From: Perkinsela sp. CCAP 1560/9
Lineage: Eukaryota > Protista > Euglenozoa: Kinetoplastea
Direction: 5' to 3'
DNA: 64,000 nucleotides
Assembly (NCBI GenBank): GCA_965644495.1
Contig: CBFFSA010000001.1
Location: forward strand, 3,720,001-3,784,000
Shown here: in pieces, positions 18,956-60,187 of the stretch
How positions within the stretch are numbered: position 1 is the first letter of the stretch
How the letters are laid out: every line of letters begins with the position of its first letter
Position numbers and translations under genes: made by a program
The notes under the pieces: generated by a model
Told to the model about the DNA's origin: nothing
Databases searched by the model: none
The model's input: the letters and a program-made list of their open reading frames with translations, nothing else

Positions 18956-20215
18956 ATGGAGACTCCCTTTCCTATGTCGGAGCATCTGTTACATGCAGCC
19001 CCTTTTCTTGTCATTGTCGCCATGGCACTGTGCGTGATTTATGTGGGCGCGTGGCGTAGTGTTGAAAGCGCTTCTCATCCCGATACAGAGCAAATGGATC
19101 ACAACTCTGCACTTCGTTTTCCCGTCGTTGGTAGTGTCGTTCTACTCTCACTGTACGTGGCCTATCGCTACCTACCGAAATATTATCTAAATCTACTTCT
19201 CTCCGGGTACTTTTGTTTTCTGGGCGTTTTTGCTGTTACCGAGACGTGTCGTCCATGGCTCGGAGAAAATAAAGGTCCCGAAATTATTGCCGTCCTGCTC
19301 TGCGGGTATCATTTTCTGTACCCCCACTGGTTGCTCAACAATGGCCTGGGCCTGTGTTTCTCCCTAACGGCTCTAGAGGTGATTACAGTGGGAAGTACCC
19401 AAATAGGAGTTCTGCTGCTTTCCTTGTTGTTTTTTTACGATATCTTTTGGGTGTTCGGCACAGAGGTGATGGTGTCTGTGGCCACGCAGGTGGAGGGTCC
19501 AATAAAGCTAATGGTACCAAAGTCGCTTTCCCCGGAGGCTACTGCCGCATTTCACATGCTTGGGTTAGGGGACATAGTTCTCCCTGGGCTGTTTATCTCT
19601 CTAATGCTCCGTTTCGATCGGAGCTTGGCCCATGTGGATGCAAATGAAACAAAGACAGTTAAAAAGTCCTCGCGAGCTGGGCGCAAACTTCAGAAAACGT
19701 CACCGCCTCACAATTCGTACTTTACGACCGCAATGGTGTGTTACGTCGGCGGGCTGATTCACACCATCTGCTCCATGTTTCTTCATGAAAGAGCCCAACC
19801 CGCTCTTCTGTACTTAGTACCTTGGACAGTAGGCGGCGTATGTGCACTTGCAATGCTTCGTGGAGAATTATCCGAGTGGTGGAGTTATACAGAAATGGAG
19901 GTCGAAGATGAAGGTTTGAAAAAAACAAACTATGATCGTTTGAAACAGTTTCTGGGTGTGGAACCCACGAAAACGGGAAACAAGAAATCTACGTCTTCTG
20001 AAGTTGATATGGACGATGCGAGAATTGATTCCAGGCAGACGAGTTCCGAGAAAGAGCTGCAAAAACCGAAAAAAACAACGACTGGCAGCTCCTCTGTTAC
20101 GCGTACAAAAACATTGAAAAGGTCGAGTTCTACGACTCGTAAGAGCTCACGTCGAAGCGCAAGCAAGGCTTCAAGAACGTCATCTGTCGCTCGCAAAAAA
20201 ACTACGCTTACGTGA
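18956..20215 (+). CDS. SPP: Signal peptide peptidase (A22B presenilin-type aspartyl protease)
   Basis: FFYDIFWVFGT, LGLGDIV and QPALLYL motifs; multi-pass hydrophobic segments; basic C-tail. Confidence 0.95.
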   Translation: METPFPMSEHLLHAAPFLVIVAMALCVIYVGAWRSVESASHPDTEQMDHNSALRFPVVGSVVLLSLYVAYRYLPKYYLNLLLSGYFCFLGVFAVTETCRPWLGENKGPEIIAVLLCGYHFLYPHWLLNNGLGLCFSLTALEVITVGSTQIGVLLLSLLFFYDIFWVFGTEVMVSVATQVEGPIKLMVPKSLSPEATAAFHMLGLGDIVLPGLFISLMLRFDRSLAHVDANETKTVKKSSRAGRKLQKTSPPHNSYFTTAMVCYVGGLIHTICSMFLHERAQPALLYLVPWTVGGVCALAMLRGELSEWWSYTEMEVEDEGLKKTNYDRLKQFLGVEPTKTGNKKSTSSEVDMDDARIDSRQTSSEKELQKPKKTTTGSSSVTRTKTLKRSSSTTRKSSRRSASKASRTSSVARKKTTLT

Positions 20216-21842: not shown

Positions 21843-22173
21843 ATGGACACACCAATAAGCATAAAAGCTCATCGGATTCGCGGCGCAGTCCTACCCATAG
21901 AATACGAGTTGCAGACTTTTCTCTCTCTTACTACGAATCCACCCCCGAGTTGGAATGTCTCCAATCCGTTGGCCTCCTGGAAGGGAATTCAGAAATATCA
22001 ATCGAATCCTATCTCAGATGAGATCTTCGGTCTAAATTCGTATAAATTTAAGCTCTCTGGAAAATTAAACTGGAGCGCTCCTCCTCGAGGGCTTCATTAT
22101 CTTAATATGTCTGACAATGGCCTTACGGGACCTGTAGATTTCGCGTATCTCCCTGGGTGTCTTAAGGAATTGT
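21843..22173 (+). pseudogene. LRR gene, 5' part, interrupted by the retrotransposon
   Basis: HRIRGAVLPIEYEL motif. LRRs stop at LPGCLKEL at the element junction. Confidence 0.85.
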
Positions 22174-22203
22174 TAATAAAGATACAGTTTCTGTACCTTG
22201 TTG
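22174..22203 (+). other. Spliced-leader (mini-exon) relic, SL nt ~10-39
   Basis: ACAGTTTCTGTAC core followed by 7 nt ending in TTG, in exact register with the 39-nt trypanosomatid SL. Not followed by a GT donor. Confidence 0.85.
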
Positions 22204-22243
22204 AATTATTTTTCAATTTTGTACTAAACGTATCTTCCGGAGC

Positions 22244-25200
22244 ATGGCCTCCAATGACCCCTTACCTGCTCCTGTCGCGCACGACGACCTCCCTCGAGGA
22301 TCTGTCAGCGCGAGGCGACACAGTCAAGCGTTTCACTTTAGCAGAAGTCGCGCAGTATCTATGAAGCTGCGCTTATCAGAAAGCACACTCTGGTCTTACT
22401 TTCCTGACACACATGCAGCAGCTGTTTTCCTTACCGAAAAGAGTTTATTCTCGAGCGTACACACGGCTGAAGCTTCCCTCGGTAAGACCCTCCGAACAGG
22501 AGCCAAAAGAGATGATGGCTTAGTCATCGAGAAATGCAACCTGCAAGAAGTTATCGATCATGAAGCATGTGACTACGTGGAGTACCGAGAAATACAGGAC
22601 CCCCATCGAATCTTCCGGCACGCGAGCTGGGCCTCAGCGTACAGCGACGAACACTTGGATCTTTGTTCTCACTATGCCTCCGCTCAGACATTTGGAAAGG
22701 CAGTTCTGAAGAAACTAAATGGGTGCAACGTACCCGGTCTATCCCATCTTTCAGTACGACATATAGCCCCTGTTAACCAGACGGAGAACCAGTCTTGGAA
22801 CCGATGTTCAATCACATTCGACGCCCCTTACAAAATCAGAGCCGGTGATCACTCCCTACCACTCCTCAACAAACCCGACAAAACTCCCATGCCCTGTGCC
22901 CATCGATGCCGCAATAAAGCAACATGCCTACATCCATGCTGCAAAATTATCGACACGACACCTGCCACCGCAGACCCAACCTTAACAGACGATGTACCTT
23001 TCACCCAACCAATGACGACAGTCAACCCAAGCACTCCTGTCATGAATCCTGAAAGACGTCCCTGTCGGCACACATGTCGAGACAAACAGGCATGTGGACA
23101 TATATGCTGCAAAGTGGGAGTACTCGTTGAACAGAGTACGTCTACGCACACACATCATGAGGCGCCATCCAGAGCGGGAGTTCCTCATAACCACTTCCCT
23201 CCTCCCTTAGTTAACACCCGTAACCACCCCGCTACGCCGTCTGCAGGAATAGAGAGCCCGGGGTCCGGCGATTCTCGTGCACCCCCATCACCAATACCAA
23301 CCAATCCTGAGCACGTGAACCTGCGCAACTCGACATCCAACATCCAGTACCGTCCGTGCCTGCACCAGTGTAGTGACAAAACGATGTGTAAACATCAATG
23401 TTGCAAAACTGGGGTTCGTGTCTCCCCAGAGGAGGCAACGAACGCGAGATGGTCACTAAGGGGTCTTCTTCCCTGGCCTAACCAAAGTTCCAATGCCCCG
23501 ATAACGACGAGGGCCTCGTCAACGGAGAGAAATATCACAGCTGAGACCCTTCGAGACGACGGAAATAGGCAAAGACAAATCCAGCAAATGGAACACCCAA
23601 CAAGTAATACAGGACGCGAAACCGGGCTCCCAGAAAGCACACCTCAAAGTACCAGTAGCGGAGTACTGCAAGGAGAACGACGCCGTCCATGTGCGCATAA
23701 ATGCAATGACAAGACACAATGCAAGCACGATTGTTGTAAAAAGGGGGTGCTTCTTAAAGCTGGAGAGATGGTCTGCTCTGCGCTACTATGGACAGCGCGT
23801 GGACTCGCTGGTATCCCAGACAACCCTCCGATAGCGCGCGATGCTCCCGTGACGCAGTCAACTGTTCGAACCGAATCAACAGAGTCCACGAGAAGGATAA
23901 ATCACACTCGGGTGAATCCCGGTGAATTCCCAGTGTATGTAATTCCTAAGTCTCCCGAACAGCAACAGGTGCAGGAAACCACGGAAGTTCCCCTTCCATT
24001 ACCTCTATCAGCCCCCGATACCTCCCTAGCAACACTGCTCCCAGAAACAGTCCTCCGAGCAACGGCTCCCGATACGACACCTGCGCAAGAATACCAAACA
24101 ATACTTCAGAGAGTCGCACGAGCTCATGAAGCTACCGAGAGTTCTACACCTACGCCCTCTGAGCTTGACATTCTGTTGCGGACATCACGCACTATTGCGG
24201 GGGGCCGCGCACTGGTGCGCTTCAATGACCAGCAGTGGAGCCAGGTATTATCAAAGATTGAGGTGCGCTGTAGGGAGTTCCTGCGACCTGCAACGAACGC
24301 GGACGATGCACTGCTTAAAGCGGATATACTATCGGCCATACTGTCGGTGTCTGTCTTCGAAATCGCTCAAGAGATTGACCCTAGGCGAGGTTTCATGCTC
24401 CGTACAAACATGGGCCACGCAAAACGCGGATTGCGCCCACTGGCCATAGACAGAACACAAAAACAGCTTGTTGCACACATTCGCCAACTAAAACGTTCAC
24501 TTGCCTTCATGCATGGCGCAGAGCGCAACAAGCAGAGAGGGATGATCAAGCAAGCAGAAAAGGCGCTGAAGTTCTACGAAGAAGAAGCCACTCTTCAGAA
24601 ACAAGAAATCGAACGCAGATGGGCCCTCACCCGTTTCCAGCGAAATCCCTGGACAGCCGCTGGTATGTGTCTGGATAGCCATGAGGAAGAGGCGCGTGAA
24701 CACGGTACAACCTTCCCAACAGCGTCCATGAGTGAAATCGAAACCTTCTTTGCGGAGTCTATGTCTAAACCCGAGACCAACTATACCATTCCATCCGACG
24801 AGTTCCTTGGCCCACGCCCGCTAGAATCCATGAATTGGACAGAAATTGATGCCGGTACTATTGCTGCTGCATTGGTCTCGAAACGGGCAGGCGCCGCTCC
24901 GGGATCAGACACCGTGACGAATGCACTTCTGAAACGTTGCTCAAGCATCTACATCTATATCGCACAAATTTTTAATGATGTCCTTCAATTCGGTATCTGC
25001 CCACTTACGTGGAAAACTGCTGTAACCCGACTGATACATAAAGGTGGCGATCCTAAGCGCATCGAAAATTGGAGGCCAATTAGCCTCACCAGCTGCCTTG
25101 GAAAGCTCTTTCACTCCATTATTGGACACCGAATCCTTCAACACGCCCTGGAGACGAATGCGATCGACACAACTATCCAGAAAGGCTTTCTTCCTGGTAT

Positions 25201-27118
25201 GAATGGAACGGTAGAGCACACTCAAGCCCTATGTGAACTCATTGAGCACCAACGAAGCCATAAACGGCAATACTGTCTTTCCCAGTTCGACATTAAGAAC
25301 GCATTCGGATCGATCCCTCATAATATTCTCTTCCAGTCTCTCCGTTGGGCCCGCGTCCCCTCACCCATCATCCAATACATTGAAAACCTTTACCATAAGG
25401 CCTCTCTCCAAATCAAATGCAGTGAAGGACTCACCAAACCAATCGAAGTCGGACGGGGCGTACTACAAGGTGACACTCTCTCCCCAGTACTATTCAACCT
25501 CTCAATGGAGTTGGTGCTGCGTTTTGTCCGGTCTAGCTGTCCAAAATACGGTATTACATGGAACGACGACGAGGTGTTCCTCAAGGCTTTCGCCGACGAC
25601 CTTACCATTCTCACGAACACTCCCAAAGAAATGCAAAACGCGACCCATGTTTTGGTGAAAGCTTTATCCCGTGTAGGAATGAGGCTCAATGTGCAGAAAT
25701 GCAGGATGCAACATATGGCAATGACTACAGACTCAGGTTACATGACTCGCCGCCCGCAGATATTGGTCGATGGCGCCCAAATCCCCCACATTTGCGACCA
25801 AGGCAGCACATTCTTAGGAATGACACTCGCCCCGGGAGCCCAACAAGGGAACATTCTCTTCCAAAAGTTGCGGGCCCGCATACGCACGTGGTTACGAAAT
25901 ATATCTAGCAGCGCCCACGAACTACCGGCCCGTTTATGGATCTACAACAATGGTATTATCTCCCGTCTTCGATACTGCTTTGTTGTGCACGCGTGTCTTA
26001 GTTTTAATCACGTCCTGCGCCTTCAAAGGTATGCAACGAATGCGATTCGGAAATGGCTAAATCTCGCAAAAACGGCTACCAGCGAGCTCTTATACTCCCA
26101 ACACGGTTGGAACCTCACCAGCCTATCCAAACTTTGGCTCCTCTGTGCAGCAGAAACGGCGAAACAGATGGAAAAATCCCGCGACCCCGCGGTTCTGCAT
26201 GCATTGCGCGTCAGGATACGGAGGGAAGAAAACAAACGGTCATCTGGACATGTACGCCCACCTTCCGAAATCTACAGCACAGATAGAAGTGAAGTACGAA
26301 GAATGATTGGCGAGGAATATGAGAGACACCTCTGCCAAGCAGTACAGCGCCGTACCTCTGTTGCCGGTCAATGGTTCCGCATAGCAACCGAAGAAGACTT
26401 AGCTAAGGACTTTGCCGCAGCACTTTGTGATTTGAAAAGCGAGAGCCTCTCGCGTTTCACAGCCTCCGTCCTGACACAAACTCCCTTGCCGACACGAGTA
26501 GCACTCCGCAAATGGGGAATGTCGAGCCACGTAAACGACGAATGTCCCATATGTGAAACAGAGCGGCAAAGCACCCGGCACGTTCTCTCTGGCTGCGCGA
26601 AATCCTTAGAGCAAGGGAGATACACCCTGCGACACAATATGATCTTACTAGCCCTCGCAAACGCTGTAGCGACCTCTCCGTCGACGAATGCGTTCCATTT
26701 CGATCTTCCACAGTTTTCCACTGTCCCGACTTGGCTCACGGAATTAGATACAGAGCTCAGACCGGACGGGTGGGTAAGGCTGCATAATGGTGAGGAATAC
26801 ATAATAGAGCTAACTTCTCCATGGGAAGAGAACTTTTCACACGCCCACGACCGCAAAGTTGCGAAATACTCCAGGTTGTATCATACAAGGAAACTGCAAC
26901 ACCCACGCACGTTTCTCTTGGTGTTCGAGGTGGGTGCCAGGGGGAAACTTGCTAGCTCCATTCGACTGCTCAACTCTCTTTTTATGGGAGAAAAACATAT
27001 TGTTTCTGAGTGTCGGAAGGAAATGACGAGAAGTGCCCTGCGTGGCAGCTTCATCATATTCCAAAAACGCGACTCAAAGACCTGGAACAATGAAACACAG
27101 TTTGCTGAGGTCGCCTAA
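22244..27118 (+). CDS. Retrotransposon polyprotein: 4 zinc fingers, reverse transcriptase, CCHC knuckle, restriction-like endonuclease
   Basis: RT motifs APGSD, NWRPISL, QKGF, DIKNAFGSI, GVLQGDTLSPVLF, AFADDL. Then CPIC...HVLSGC, GRYTLRHN, RPDG..IIELTSPWE, K..KY, FEVGARG. Confidence 0.95.
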   Translation: MASNDPLPAPVAHDDLPRGSVSARRHSQAFHFSRSRAVSMKLRLSESTLWSYFPDTHAAAVFLTEKSLFSSVHTAEASLGKTLRTGAKRDDGLVIEKCNLQEVIDHEACDYVEYREIQDPHRIFRHASWASAYSDEHLDLCSHYASAQTFGKAVLKKLNGCNVPGLSHLSVRHIAPVNQTENQSWNRCSITFDAPYKIRAGDHSLPLLNKPDKTPMPCAHRCRNKATCLHPCCKIIDTTPATADPTLTDDVPFTQPMTTVNPSTPVMNPERRPCRHTCRDKQACGHICCKVGVLVEQSTSTHTHHEAPSRAGVPHNHFPPPLVNTRNHPATPSAGIESPGSGDSRAPPSPIPTNPEHVNLRNSTSNIQYRPCLHQCSDKTMCKHQCCKTGVRVSPEEATNARWSLRGLLPWPNQSSNAPITTRASSTERNITAETLRDDGNRQRQIQQMEHPTSNTGRETGLPESTPQSTSSGVLQGERRRPCAHKCNDKTQCKHDCCKKGVLLKAGEMVCSALLWTARGLAGIPDNPPIARDAPVTQSTVRTESTESTRRINHTRVNPGEFPVYVIPKSPEQQQVQETTEVPLPLPLSAPDTSLATLLPETVLRATAPDTTPAQEYQTILQRVARAHEATESSTPTPSELDILLRTSRTIAGGRALVRFNDQQWSQVLSKIEVRCREFLRPATNADDALLKADILSAILSVSVFEIAQEIDPRRGFMLRTNMGHAKRGLRPLAIDRTQKQLVAHIRQLKRSLAFMHGAERNKQRGMIKQAEKALKFYEEEATLQKQEIERRWALTRFQRNPWTAAGMCLDSHEEEAREHGTTFPTASMSEIETFFAESMSKPETNYTIPSDEFLGPRPLESMNWTEIDAGTIAAALVSKRAGAAPGSDTVTNALLKRCSSIYIYIAQIFNDVLQFGICPLTWKTAVTRLIHKGGDPKRIENWRPISLTSCLGKLFHSIIGHRILQHALETNAIDTTIQKGFLPGMNGTVEHTQALCELIEHQRSHKRQYCLSQFDIKNAFGSIPHNILFQSLRWARVPSPIIQYIENLYHKASLQIKCSEGLTKPIEVGRGVLQGDTLSPVLFNLSMELVLRFVRSSCPKYGITWNDDEVFLKAFADDLTILTNTPKEMQNATHVLVKALSRVGMRLNVQKCRMQHMAMTTDSGYMTRRPQILVDGAQIPHICDQGSTFLGMTLAPGAQQGNILFQKLRARIRTWLRNISSSAHELPARLWIYNNGIISRLRYCFVVHACLSFNHVLRLQRYATNAIRKWLNLAKTATSELLYSQHGWNLTSLSKLWLLCAAETAKQMEKSRDPAVLHALRVRIRREENKRSSGHVRPPSEIYSTDRSEVRRMIGEEYERHLCQAVQRRTSVAGQWFRIATEEDLAKDFAAALCDLKSESLSRFTASVLTQTPLPTRVALRKWGMSSHVNDECPICETERQSTRHVLSGCAKSLEQGRYTLRHNMILLALANAVATSPSTNAFHFDLPQFSTVPTWLTELDTELRPDGWVRLHNGEEYIIELTSPWEENFSHAHDRKVAKYSRLYHTRKLQHPRTFLLVFEVGARGKLASSIRLLNSLFMGEKHIVSECRKEMTRSALRGSFIIFQKRDSKTWNNETQFAEVA

Positions 27119-27230
27119 AGGTGAATGGATACCACACGTTCTGTGCGTGTGTTCTGGACATTTTATTTTCCTGTATCCATTCATAACCAATCTCTGCACT
27201 ATAAGTGTATGACAAATAAATAAATAAATA

Positions 27231-27622
27231 AATTGTATATGAATCGTTTCCACGGACGCCTTGATGTAAGCCTTCTTCCGGCGGGCATAGAGGTCATCAG
27301 TTTCGGTTCGAACAGTTTTGAAGGAAAGTTTGATTTTTCTACTTTACCTACAGCGTTGACGTCGGTCATGATTGGTAGGAACCAATTAAGCGGTTGCTTG
27401 AACGTTTTAGTGCTACCTTCTGAATTACAGACTTTATGGATAGAAGAAAATTTCTTTGACGGAATAGTGAAGCTTGATTTATTGCGGCTTCAATGCGCGA
27501 ATTTGATTGCATTTAAAATACATGATAACTATTTTACTATAGAAGGAAACTCGACCAAGCACGCTTGGATTCTGCACCCGCAAAAAGTAGGTAAAAGAAG
27601 TAGTAAAAAAAAGATTCAGTAA
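27231..27622 (+). pseudogene. LRR gene, 3' part, resuming after the retrotransposon
   Basis: LYMNRFHGRLDVSLLP continues the LRR broken at 22173. Confidence 0.85.
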
Positions 27623-57776: not shown

Positions 57777-60187
57777 GTTTCTGTACCTTGTATTTGTTTT
57801 CTTAAACTGTATCAACAACATGTCCGTTAATCTCACTTCCCCGCGGAATGTTGACAATGCGTTGCCGGACCTCCCTCGAGCTTCCGCTGCGTACAGACGC
57901 AAACACTGCATTTCGTCCACAGCAGATCTCGACCCGTTAAGATACGACTTCTCACTGATCTGCGCTGGACATATTTCCCCGACATTAAGGCTGTCAGCCA
58001 ATGGTCCATAGTTAGAGAAAGAATCCCATCCGGGCAAGGTGCGGAAATAGCGATTACAAAACTATTAAATAAGCATCAGCACACGCCCTGGTAGCTGAAC
58101 ACGCCAGGTCACGAGGAAAGAACACCCCCACACCACCTCCCTGCACCCAAACTGGGTTTCGATGCATGCAGATCCGACCCTGAACCTAGGAAAGACGTAT
58201 TCCACCCCAAGCACGCTCAATAAAGCAGCCGTGAAGGCCTTATAGGGTAGAGAAATATGTGGATTGAAACACATAACAATAGAGCTCATAAGACAGAAGG
58301 AAAGATCACCAAGCGCTGAACCAACGGGATACGAAAAACCAAGCAGGACAGAAGAATCTCCGCACAAAATCGCTGCTCCACGAACGTCCCTGAAAGGTAA
58401 ACCTGATGAATACAAAGGACCATGCAAACACCGCTGCTTGAGAAAACTCTCCTGTGTGCACAAGTGCTGCAAAATACGTATACAGGGGTGAAAACTGCCA
58501 TCTGGGGGGGTCTAAAATTAGCAAAAACTTTTCAATTTCGGAAAATAATACCGCATTCGAGAGCTCTCGCAGAGTTGTATGTCTTTGCACTGGTAGCTGC
58601 TGACATATCAAATTAGAACTCCAAATACCGAATAGGCCAAAAAAGCAAATTGTCACTTAAAGAATAATAAAAAATCTCAGATATTTTTAGGAGGCATTAT
58701 TTTAAAACCCGTGTTGCATCCACAACATGCACCCTTCTTTTCTACGATGATTCTACAACGTATTCCGAAGTTTTTAAACTTATTATCAAACTTATCTTTG
58801 TCTTTTGCCTGAAGTTTATCGTAAAAAACATGAATCGTTCCACCCAGAGTTTCACAGTTCCCTAGTGGACCCAAACACTTTGGTAAGTCCGGGAATAAGA
58901 CTGTATTTTCTCGAAGTCGGCCACAAGAAGTAATCTTTGGTGTTCTTTAATCTTTCCTGGCAAAGTATAAGAACGGGCGTTCGAAACACCATGAGAATTC
59001 CTTGAGCGAACTCGCTTTTGGGGCGTAAAATGGGGCAAAAATGAAAAATTGCCATATTTTCACAAGAAAAAAAACATGTTTTTTTCTCATCGGGTTAAAT
59101 CTTTCAAGCCGAGCGTTCCGAATACGCCAAAGACATACAACTCTGCGAGATCTCTCCAATGCGCTATTATTTTCCAAAATTGGACAATTTTTACAAAATT
59201 TAGACCCCCCCCCAGATGGAAGTTTTCACCCCTGTACTTGTATGTACCGTTGCCAAGTGTGGACGCTCAGGACAACTTATCAACGAGAGCACCACCACCT
59301 GATGTCCAAGCAGGAACCGCAAACCCCACCATCCTCGGGTCATGTGAGAAGGAAGAGGAAGAAAGAGGAAGAAATCAATCTTGATCTTTCAAGATTAGAT
59401 TCACAAGAAGAATCAGAGATCCTCTTTCTTCCTCTTTCTTCCTCTTTCAAGACTAGATTCTTTCAGAATCTTGATCTCCTCATCATGTGCCACCCTCTGG
59501 CGCGACTCCTAGAAATGCAACACTTCACTCACTGAACACCGCACGAGTAGAACCATGCCGTCACCGATGCTCCGCCAAGTTATGCTGTCTGCACAACTGT
59601 TGCAAAATATATGGACCACTCAGGTGCAATGAACCCCTCGTCCGACCTTCTCCTCTCCCCCCTGTTTCGCACACTACGGAAGGTCGAGTTCCATCGTGGG
59701 ATGAAACAAACGAAAAGGAACGCCTTCGTCTGCTTGAACAACACAAATCCATAGCAGGAGGGAAAATGTGTCTAAAGCTTAACGACGACCAATGGAAAGC
59801 CGTCGAAAATAAGGCATACGATGCATGCCGAAGAATACTACATCCCATAGTAGACACCCCGGAAATCGCCGTCAAAAACGCAGAACTCTTGGGGGTCCTC
59901 TATGGCGGTGGCGGTCTATGAAATTGCACATGAAATAAATCCCACCAAAGGTTTCCTCACACGATCGAATCGCGGACACGCCCGATTTAAGCACCGACCT
60001 CTTTCCTCTGAAAATGCAGCTCATCAAATGGCAAAACACATACGCAGCCAAAAGAAATCACTACGCTACACGCACGGAACGGACCGCCAAGAGCTCCGTC
60101 GCTGCATTAAGGAAAGCGAGAAACTAGAGAAAGTATACTCAGAAGAGGCCAAAGCTCATAAAACACAGCTAGAGAGGCATTGGGCCC
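57777..60187 (+). mobile_element. Decayed, 3'-truncated relative of the RLE retrotransposon, SL-fragment-headed
   Basis: Starts GTTTCTGTACCTTGT, ATG at 57820. Homologous blocks: DLPRAS, PCKHRC..CVHKCCK, PCRHRC..CLHNCCK, IAGG...LNDDQW, YEIAHEINPTKGF, LERHWA. Contains stops and frameshifts. Confidence 0.85.
58483..59234. mobile_element. Complete 752-bp non-autonomous Tc1/mariner-type element (CAGGGGTG family)
   Basis: ~105-bp imperfect TIRs, TA duplication (58481-82, 59235-36); inserted into the decayed retroelement. Confidence 0.92.

Follow-up and report, generated by a model that had tools for sequence, protein, structure and literature searches.

A non-LTR retrotransposon family of Perkinsela with a predicted restriction-like endonuclease and an array of HFM1/Mer3-type zinc-finger-like motifs

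We analyzed a stretch of 64,000 nt from the kinetoplastid Perkinsela sp. CCAP 1560/9 (positions 3,720,001 to 3,784,000 of contig CBFFSA010000001.1, assembly GCA_965644495.1), hereafter called the window, in whose numbering coordinates are given unless a contig or locus is named. On its forward strand lies a full-length retrotransposon without long terminal repeats (non-LTR) of the restriction-like endonuclease (RLE) type (22175..27233, +). We derived its length of 5.06 kb from a second copy on contig C51, since the similarity to that copy (98.8–99.5% identity) starts at 22175 and ends at 27233 between unrelated flanks; homology to other subfamilies likewise begins at 22170–22176. The element contains a single open reading frame (ORF) of 1624 amino acids (22244..27118, +, including the stop codon), and translation revealed no internal stop, as an earlier account of the window made from its letters alone (the preliminary description) had stated. 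The encoded protein consists, in this order, of a domain of about 170 amino acids, four zinc-finger-like motifs on linkers rich in Pro, Ser and Thr, a reverse transcriptase (RT), a CCHC finger and the RLE. In the genome of 21 Mb (110 contigs) we found at least 30 related copies with protein identities of 47–72%, and open frames of 1480–1880 amino acids are kept in many subfamilies. The copies are dispersed and differ in their flanks, and each has defined 5′ and 3′ boundaries and a tail that is A/T-rich or (TAAA)n. Their insertion sites vary from copy to copy: the window copy interrupts a leucine-rich repeat (LRR)-type gene, while others lie beside a transfer RNA (tRNA)-like sequence, in a (TG)n tract or elsewhere, and the family copies are not located in ribosomal DNA (rDNA). 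Because the ORF is intact, the second copy is nearly identical and many subfamilies are intact as well, recent activity of the window element is likely, and we regard it as a probably recently active member of a large RLE family. The C51 copy itself has a broken frame, in which 122 bp of RT-coding sequence (window 25578–25699) are swapped for about 0.84 kb of foreign sequence. Directly past its tail, a tRNA-like T-arm (GGTTCGATTCC) was observed in the 3′ flank (L021:3060-3130).

We assigned the element to the RLE type because it combines the RT with a CCHC finger and the residues R-P-D...E-L-T...K and has no apurinic endonuclease-like (APE) domain. The region from the RT to the C-terminus was aligned with that of twelve relatives. 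The RT (residues 937–1184; 25052..25795, +) is matched by Pfam RVT_1 at 6.4e-33, and in its FADD motif (residues 1116–1119) D1118 and D1119 are invariant. The CCHC finger (C1434, C1437, H1446 and C1451; 26543..26596, +), which coincides with a weak Pfam zf-RVT match at about residues 1404–1453, shows the spacing C-x2-C-x8-H-x4-C without exception in the alignment, and the residues of the RLE core (R1506-P-D1508, E1522-L-T1524 and K1538; 26759..26857, +) are equally invariant. Neither an APE domain nor Pfam Exo_endo_phos was found in the ORF by a Pfam scan. The best sequence matches in the PDB were R2 proteins (2e-31), with LINE-1 ORF2 close behind (about 1e-28). From this set of residues and matches, the ORF encodes an RLE-type non-LTR retrotransposon protein with a predicted endonuclease, in line with the preliminary description.

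The four zinc-finger-like motifs were located by a six-frame regular-expression scan of the window with the pattern C-x-H-x-C-x5-C-x-H-x-C-C, and their coordinates refer to the cores of 16 amino acids. All are on the forward strand: finger 1 (CAHRCRNKATCLHPCC, 22895..22942, +) covers residues 218–233, finger 2 (CRHTCRDKQACGHICC, 23063..23110, +) residues 274–289, finger 3 (CLHQCSDKTMCKHQCC, 23357..23404, +) residues 372–387 and finger 4 (CAHKCNDKTQCKHDCC, 23690..23737, +) residues 483–498. Counted with five flanking residues, each finger has a net charge of +4 to +5. From the window's own six-frame Cys/His frequencies we expected 4.7e-6 occurrences of the strict pattern per window, compared to six observed. 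The two distal ones start at 58423, where a stop follows seven codons on, and at 59556. Both are kept in a fragment at 57894..60186 (+) that we consider a decayed relative because residues 26–794 of the ORF were matched there by tblastn in pieces of alternating frames, with frameshifts and many stops. Thus four dispersed copies in one frame of the ORF, Thr/Pro/Ser-rich linkers (33% of the inter-finger residues together) and two further motifs in a decayed relative, all claimed before, were recovered. Other parts of the preliminary description need correction. Its eight-ligand pattern does not hold, as we found seven invariant Cys/His and an invariant Lys in 49 distinct copies, and the ending CCK followed by x-G-V fails for finger 1, which ends in CCKIID without a K-x-G-V tail. 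The four fingers do lie in the N-terminal part, where they had been described as the N-terminal module, but the conserved domain of about 170 amino acids that precedes them had been overlooked.

Across subfamilies whose proteins are 47–72% identical, the seven Cys/His (C,H,C,C,H,C,C; hence CHC-CHCC finger) and the one Lys are invariant in all 49 distinct fingers. The longer pattern P-C-x-H-x-C-x-x-K-x-x-C-x-H-x-C-C-K is invariant or nearly so, and the linkers cannot be aligned. We counted two to five fingers per copy in every subfamily with a readable N-terminal part, these numbers being minima for copies whose N-termini are cut, and at least 150 finger instances genome-wide; in one subfamily, five fingers are placed upstream of the conserved N-terminal domain. 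An AlphaFold2 (AF2) model of one finger, computed from a 100-row alignment, predicts a compact structure (predicted local distance difference test (pLDDT) of about 86 in the core) in which a short helix spans the CCK and the residue ahead of the first Cys is bridged to the one that follows the Lys. No Pfam family was matched by single fingers, by the N-terminal 785 amino acids or by the HFM1 finger regions introduced below. A protein word-index search with residues 205–520 gave no matches, probably because this region is too disordered and its motifs are too short for the index, and a feature search of the ESM Atlas yielded no usable match. One match of the finger region to a viral glycoprotein in the PDB (E-value 1.6) was rejected as a chance match. 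Many short metagenomic ORFs carry two to five fingers of a subtype ending in CCKRHL, which also occurs in one deep branch of the family. A deep-branching member with five fingers of this subtype (L045, 2400-2430 and 7180-7260) has (TG)n on both flanks, which suggests insertion into a microsatellite.

The preliminary description had identified the motif as a Mer3/HFM1-type finger and had proposed to search databases with a profile of its copies. We searched 1.84 billion representative proteins with a profile of the 49 element fingers (E-value of at most 0.001) and obtained 158 matching proteins; the strict pattern is retained in all 150 that were listed. Pfam was run on 27 of these matches, mostly the longer ones, and 20 of the 27 proved to be single-cassette helicases with DEAD, Helicase_C, winged-helix and Sec63 domains, or C-terminal pieces of them. 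In each of the 20 the motif lies just after Sec63, and these verified Sec63 helicases are matched at E-values of 1e-5 to 5e-4. One of them (P0130), with a motif starting at residue 1128, belongs to a cluster named HFM1 of the spotted gar by NCBI. In the opposite direction, a helicase-only profile composed of 22 helicase fingers matched fingers 1 to 4 of the window with 28.8, 44.2, 39.9 and 36.9 bits, respectively. As the profile searches match in both directions, the proposed resemblance is supported, and at the level of sequence the element fingers are the same module as the HFM1/Mer3 finger after Sec63. Element and helicase fingers agree in the pattern of their ligands and in its spacing. 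They also have in common the invariant Lys, the Pro preceding the first Cys, a central [DN]-K and, after the CC, the tail K-x-G-[VIL]. They differ in that the helicases have one or two copies directly after Sec63, whereas the element has two to five toward the N-terminus of its retrotransposon protein, a new context for the module in which the element is not a helicase-family member. In human HFM1, the variants C1157Y and Q1164X have been reported within the zinc finger motif (PMC8383409). The likeliest Mer3-type gene of the host is a single-cassette DEAD/Sec63 helicase of 1544 amino acids on contig C1 (C1:946337-950968; L042:338-4969). As a donor of the fingers it was rejected, its ORF being without the motif; in this genome the finger is present in retrotransposons and absent from the host Sec63 helicase.

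To place the family we calculated a quick RT tree of 63 sequences, composed without curated references; two profile searches for RT relatives returned no CRE, NeSL, R4 or HERO reference, only automatically named ‘R2’ and domain-tagged proteins. All 17 finger-bearing elements and four fragments fall into one clade with a Shimodaira–Hasegawa-like approximate likelihood ratio test (SH-aLRT) support of 99. This clade is sister to a group with the protein P0167, which has four ZAP-like CCCH fingers before the RT, and stands apart from a group with an automatically named R2 and two proteins that bear Myb and Ulp1, respectively. Several database proteins within the finger clade add no second host, because they come from one ENA assembly and their RT regions are identical or nearly identical to genome copies. 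A 50%-identical RT fragment was found in the transcriptome of Apiculatamorpha spiralis (strain PhF-6), a kinetoplastid cultured on a bodonid prey (PMC7859406). The more distant RLE relatives, none of which has the CHC-CHCC motif, are equipped with C2H2 fingers, an AlkB-like domain, NADAR or a ubiquitin hydrolase. Judging from these protein sequences, accessory domains are exchanged freely in this RLE group. The metagenomic relatives P0167, P0178/P0179/P0182, P0180 and P0181 carry such modules as four ZAP-like CCCH fingers, a ubiquitin C-terminal hydrolase, NADAR and an AlkB-like oxygenase, and in P0178 the hydrolase is located after the RLE. The RT of a further protein, P0034 (L043:1317-3524, JGI metagenome), groups on a long branch with long interspersed nuclear elements (LINEs) of the APE type. 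P0034 has two fingers of the same type at its extreme C-terminus, with the ending CCKRHL, and no APE or other endonuclease domain was found on its 4.4-kb contig. By its tree position and finger placement, P0034 may represent a second, independent recruitment of the finger module.

The domain preceding the fingers (residues about 28–200; 22325..22843, +) is conserved among 16 subfamily members with 30–55% identity and 14 invariant columns. An AF2 model predicts a globular fold with a pLDDT of about 90 for residues 40–175, for which Foldseek returned no match. For the first half of the domain, VIA-align gave weak similarities to the DNA-binding domain of I-HmuI (Z 5.2), to a Paulinella sCTP (Z 5.1) and to the DNA-binding domain of I-TevI (Z 4.3). 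Since these Z values are below the reliable level of the tool, a DNA-binding role suggested by the model is only a lead.

Both ends of the element show distinct signatures. The first 29 nt (22175..22203, +) correspond to the 3′ part of a spliced-leader (SL) exon, and the identical block precedes GT at 96 genome sites, a tandem pair among them. Every readable full-length copy of the family opens with an SL-derived block. The head of 28–29 nt is unchanged in at least nine subfamilies, the proteins of which are only about 50% identical, and its junction to the body differs (window 22175–22203 and loci L003, L005–L007, L009, L014, L022, L037 and L045). A core of 26 nt occurs in 422 exact copies in the genome, of which 296 are preceded by TAACG and 96 continue with GT. 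Because of the 296 cores preceded by TAACG, the true leader is probably longer than the head, which would lack roughly the first ten nucleotides. The block holds the core CAGTTTCTGTAC, known from the spliced leaders of kinetoplastids and diplonemids, and the point of truncation would be close to the insertion site of CRE, SLACS and CZAR at nt 11/12. At the other end, the 3′ untranslated region (UTR; 27119..27233, +) ends in a (TAAA)n tail and contains conserved blocks of hairpin-like appearance. One resembles ACGCGTTyTGTGCGCGT and another reads ATCTCTGCA...TATGAyAA; both are found again in diverged subfamilies and probably form an RNA handle recognized by the RT. The former is an inverted repeat, and a block ATCTCTGCAG-N-CTGCATGATAA stands directly before the tail; shared 3′ blocks were seen at window 27119–27215 and in the 3′ UTRs of L002, L003, L005, L008, L010, L012 and L030.

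Considering all of these features, we think it reasonably probable that the window holds an intact RLE element which shares an HFM1/Mer3-type module through shuffling and uses it as a nucleic-acid clamp in target-primed reverse transcription. The shared finger would be explained most economically by a shuffling of domains that involved the element's ancestor and a cellular protein. Each basic finger would bind zinc through its seven Cys/His, and the array would act as a multivalent clamp on nucleic acid while the element is copied. Most likely it would keep the ribonucleoprotein (RNP) on the target DNA, jointly with the conserved N-terminal domain and either at low sequence specificity or by recognizing DNA structure, and would do the job of the zinc finger and Myb modules at the N-terminus of R2. 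Because the RNA of the element has an SL-derived head, the copying probably starts from an SL-bearing RNA as template, and the leader could have been gained by trans-splicing or by a template jump. Regarding the fingers themselves, DNA binding is a tentative assignment that we judge to fall a little short of probable; it is drawn by analogy with the N-terminal modules of R2 and from the fact that the other carrier of the finger is a DNA helicase, and the varied insertion sites (LRR gene, beside a tRNA-like sequence, (TG)n tract) fit it. Further analogies for a role on nucleic acid are offered by the sister RT lineage, where the corresponding N-terminal position is taken by the four ZAP-like CCCH fingers, by the other RLE relatives with C2H2 fingers or Myb, and by Utopia with its one to three N-terminal zinc fingers (PMC4640811).

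Several observations weigh against this picture. The seven ligands do not lead to an obvious stoichiometry of one or two zinc ions. Neither a sequence match to the finger profile nor a fold match to the finger model (Foldseek, VIA) was found in the PDB, although the missing fold match says little since the model comprises 36 residues only. The variable number and position of the fingers would suit target recognition no better than a generic module for binding or interaction. In the literature we found no established role for the finger in HFM1/Mer3, and the host Sec63 helicase has no C-x-H-x-C motif anywhere in its 1544 amino acids, so that no finger donor is visible in the genome. Among the public runs holding element sequence (four, from one study, in the form of contigs) there was no RNA run, and we found no joint skipping the element in these contigs, which break at the SL head and at the tail.

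Among the alternatives to target-DNA binding, the one that survives best is that the fingers bind or chaperone the RNA of the element itself, in the manner of ORF1 or Gag knuckles, an option that we consider possible but rather doubtful. Like arrays of CCHC knuckles, the short and basic fingers vary in number and are set on disordered linkers, the element has no separate ORF1, and the conserved structured blocks of the 3′ UTR need recognition by some part of the protein. Moreover, fingers of the ZAP-like CCCH type occupy this N-terminal place in the sister lineage; ZAP, after which this Pfam family is named, is an RNA-binding protein. However, in structurally studied RLE elements it is the RT, with its extensions, that holds the RNA, and HFM1/Mer3 is a DNA helicase. 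In addition, as described in one structural account (PMC10499050), the N-terminal modules of such elements contact the target DNA. It is unlikely that the array is instead a protein–protein module which recruits a host factor, for example one of recombination, repair or single-stranded DNA (ssDNA) binding, as the tails of Mer3 do. Variable copy number would suit avidity toward an oligomeric partner, and the motif of Mer3/HFM1 is found in a largely unstructured C-terminal tail beside a partner-binding immunoglobulin (Ig)-like/Sec63 region (PMC10201424), but no partner of the finger itself is known, and a strongly positive charge combined with Cys/His knuckles is seen more typically in proteins that bind nucleic acid.

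We regard it as very improbable that the resemblance to HFM1/Mer3 reflects convergence of a short Cys/His-rich motif and not common descent. The motif offers only about 20 informative positions, Cys-rich repeats often arise, and no finger-bearing donor gene was seen in the genome. On the other hand, the Pro, the [DN]-K and the K-x-G-[VIL] are shared beyond the seven identically spaced ligands, the helicase motif is always found at the same place, just after Sec63, and E-values of 1e-5 to 5e-4 were reached against 1.84 billion proteins with the strict pattern kept in 150 of the 150 best matches. It is scarcely tenable that, instead of a mobile element, we are dealing with a host gene that arose by domestication or with an inert relic, for even though neither RNA data nor an insertion polymorphism were obtained, at least 30 dispersed copies in diverged subfamilies have their own flanks, defined ends and an A/T-rich tail, a 99% identical copy occupies an unrelated locus and the window copy interrupts an LRR gene.

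Compared to known systems, the architecture that we favor, a clamp of CHC-CHCC fingers on an RLE backbone, is closest in outline to R2 (R2Bm, R2Tg), with which the family shares a single ORF, a (here presumed) nucleic-acid-binding N-terminal region, the RT, a CCHC finger and a PD-(D/E)xK-type endonuclease. R2, which targets 28S rDNA, is equipped with Myb and C2H2 fingers, while the family has CHC-CHCC fingers, an SL head and varied insertion sites; no Myb or C2H2 domain was found in the window ORF by Pfam. The CRE clade (SLACS, CZAR, CRE1/2) is likewise of the RLE type, is found in kinetoplastid-type genomes and is linked to the spliced leader. CRE elements, however, insert within SL RNA genes, between nt 11 and 12, whereas the copies of the family lie outside these genes and the SL-derived sequence forms their own 5′ head. 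The family also shares a variable N-terminal module with the RLE elements Utopia and NeSL, in which this part is made up of one to three zinc fingers or a Ulp1-like protease (PMC4640811). In contrast to the family, those elements target U2 small nuclear RNA (snRNA) or SL genes, and the only Ulp1-bearing relative that we found groups away from the finger family on the RT tree. The P0167 lineage, the nearest outgroup clade, is 31% identical over the RT-CCHC-RLE region and also has four fingers before the RT, but these belong to Pfam zf-CCCH_10 and no CHC-CHCC motif is present. The architecture had been called undescribed, and this view was strengthened: there is no Pfam family or PDB sequence match, and a full-text literature search revealed no paper on an HFM1/Mer3-type finger in a retrotransposon. 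The family has the ordinary backbone of an RLE retrotransposon, joined to a finger module that had not been recorded before and that links it to a meiotic helicase.

The RLE LINEs such as R2 serve as models of target-primed reverse transcription, and work is under way to engineer them for gene insertion; where and how they engage DNA is decided by their N-terminal modules. To these modules the family adds a finger type that is absent from Pfam and the PDB and strictly conserved in two to five copies across deeply diverged subfamilies. The same finger is found in HFM1/Mer3, where its role is not defined and human infertility variants are located in it (PMC8383409), and a multicopy retrotransposon provides many natural variants for studying its zinc stoichiometry and its ligand. 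One may speculate, and we do so with considerable doubt, that the CHC-CHCC finger is a portable recognizer of DNA structure (ssDNA, branched DNA, nicks) which non-LTR elements recruited at least twice, namely at the N-terminus of the RLE family and at the C-terminus of P0034. If this were true, its use in target-primed reverse transcription would reveal how the finger of HFM1/Mer3 acts at recombination intermediates.

Sequences related to the SL RNA were also observed apart from the usual head. In locus L037 (about 2690-2740), a full head (GTACTTTGTTG) has its end repeated in part directly behind it (TACCTTGTTG), and this double head resembles the SL relics of dinoflagellates that result from repeated leader addition and retroposition. 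The foreign sequence in the C51 copy (L021:662-1503) contains an SL head fused directly to SL-RNA-intron-like sequence (TTCATCCTTTCTTTCCCCGGCAACGGGCAT), as though a short GT...AG piece had been removed, and by its composition looks like an SL-RNA-derived, short interspersed nuclear element (SINE)-like insert. Further SL cores are located in the window at 19946 (+) and 32337 (-). The latter runs into SL-RNA-intron-like sequence, and because its splice donor is altered (TTGATAC, not TTGGTAC) we consider it a dispersed SL-RNA-like pseudogene or a SINE.

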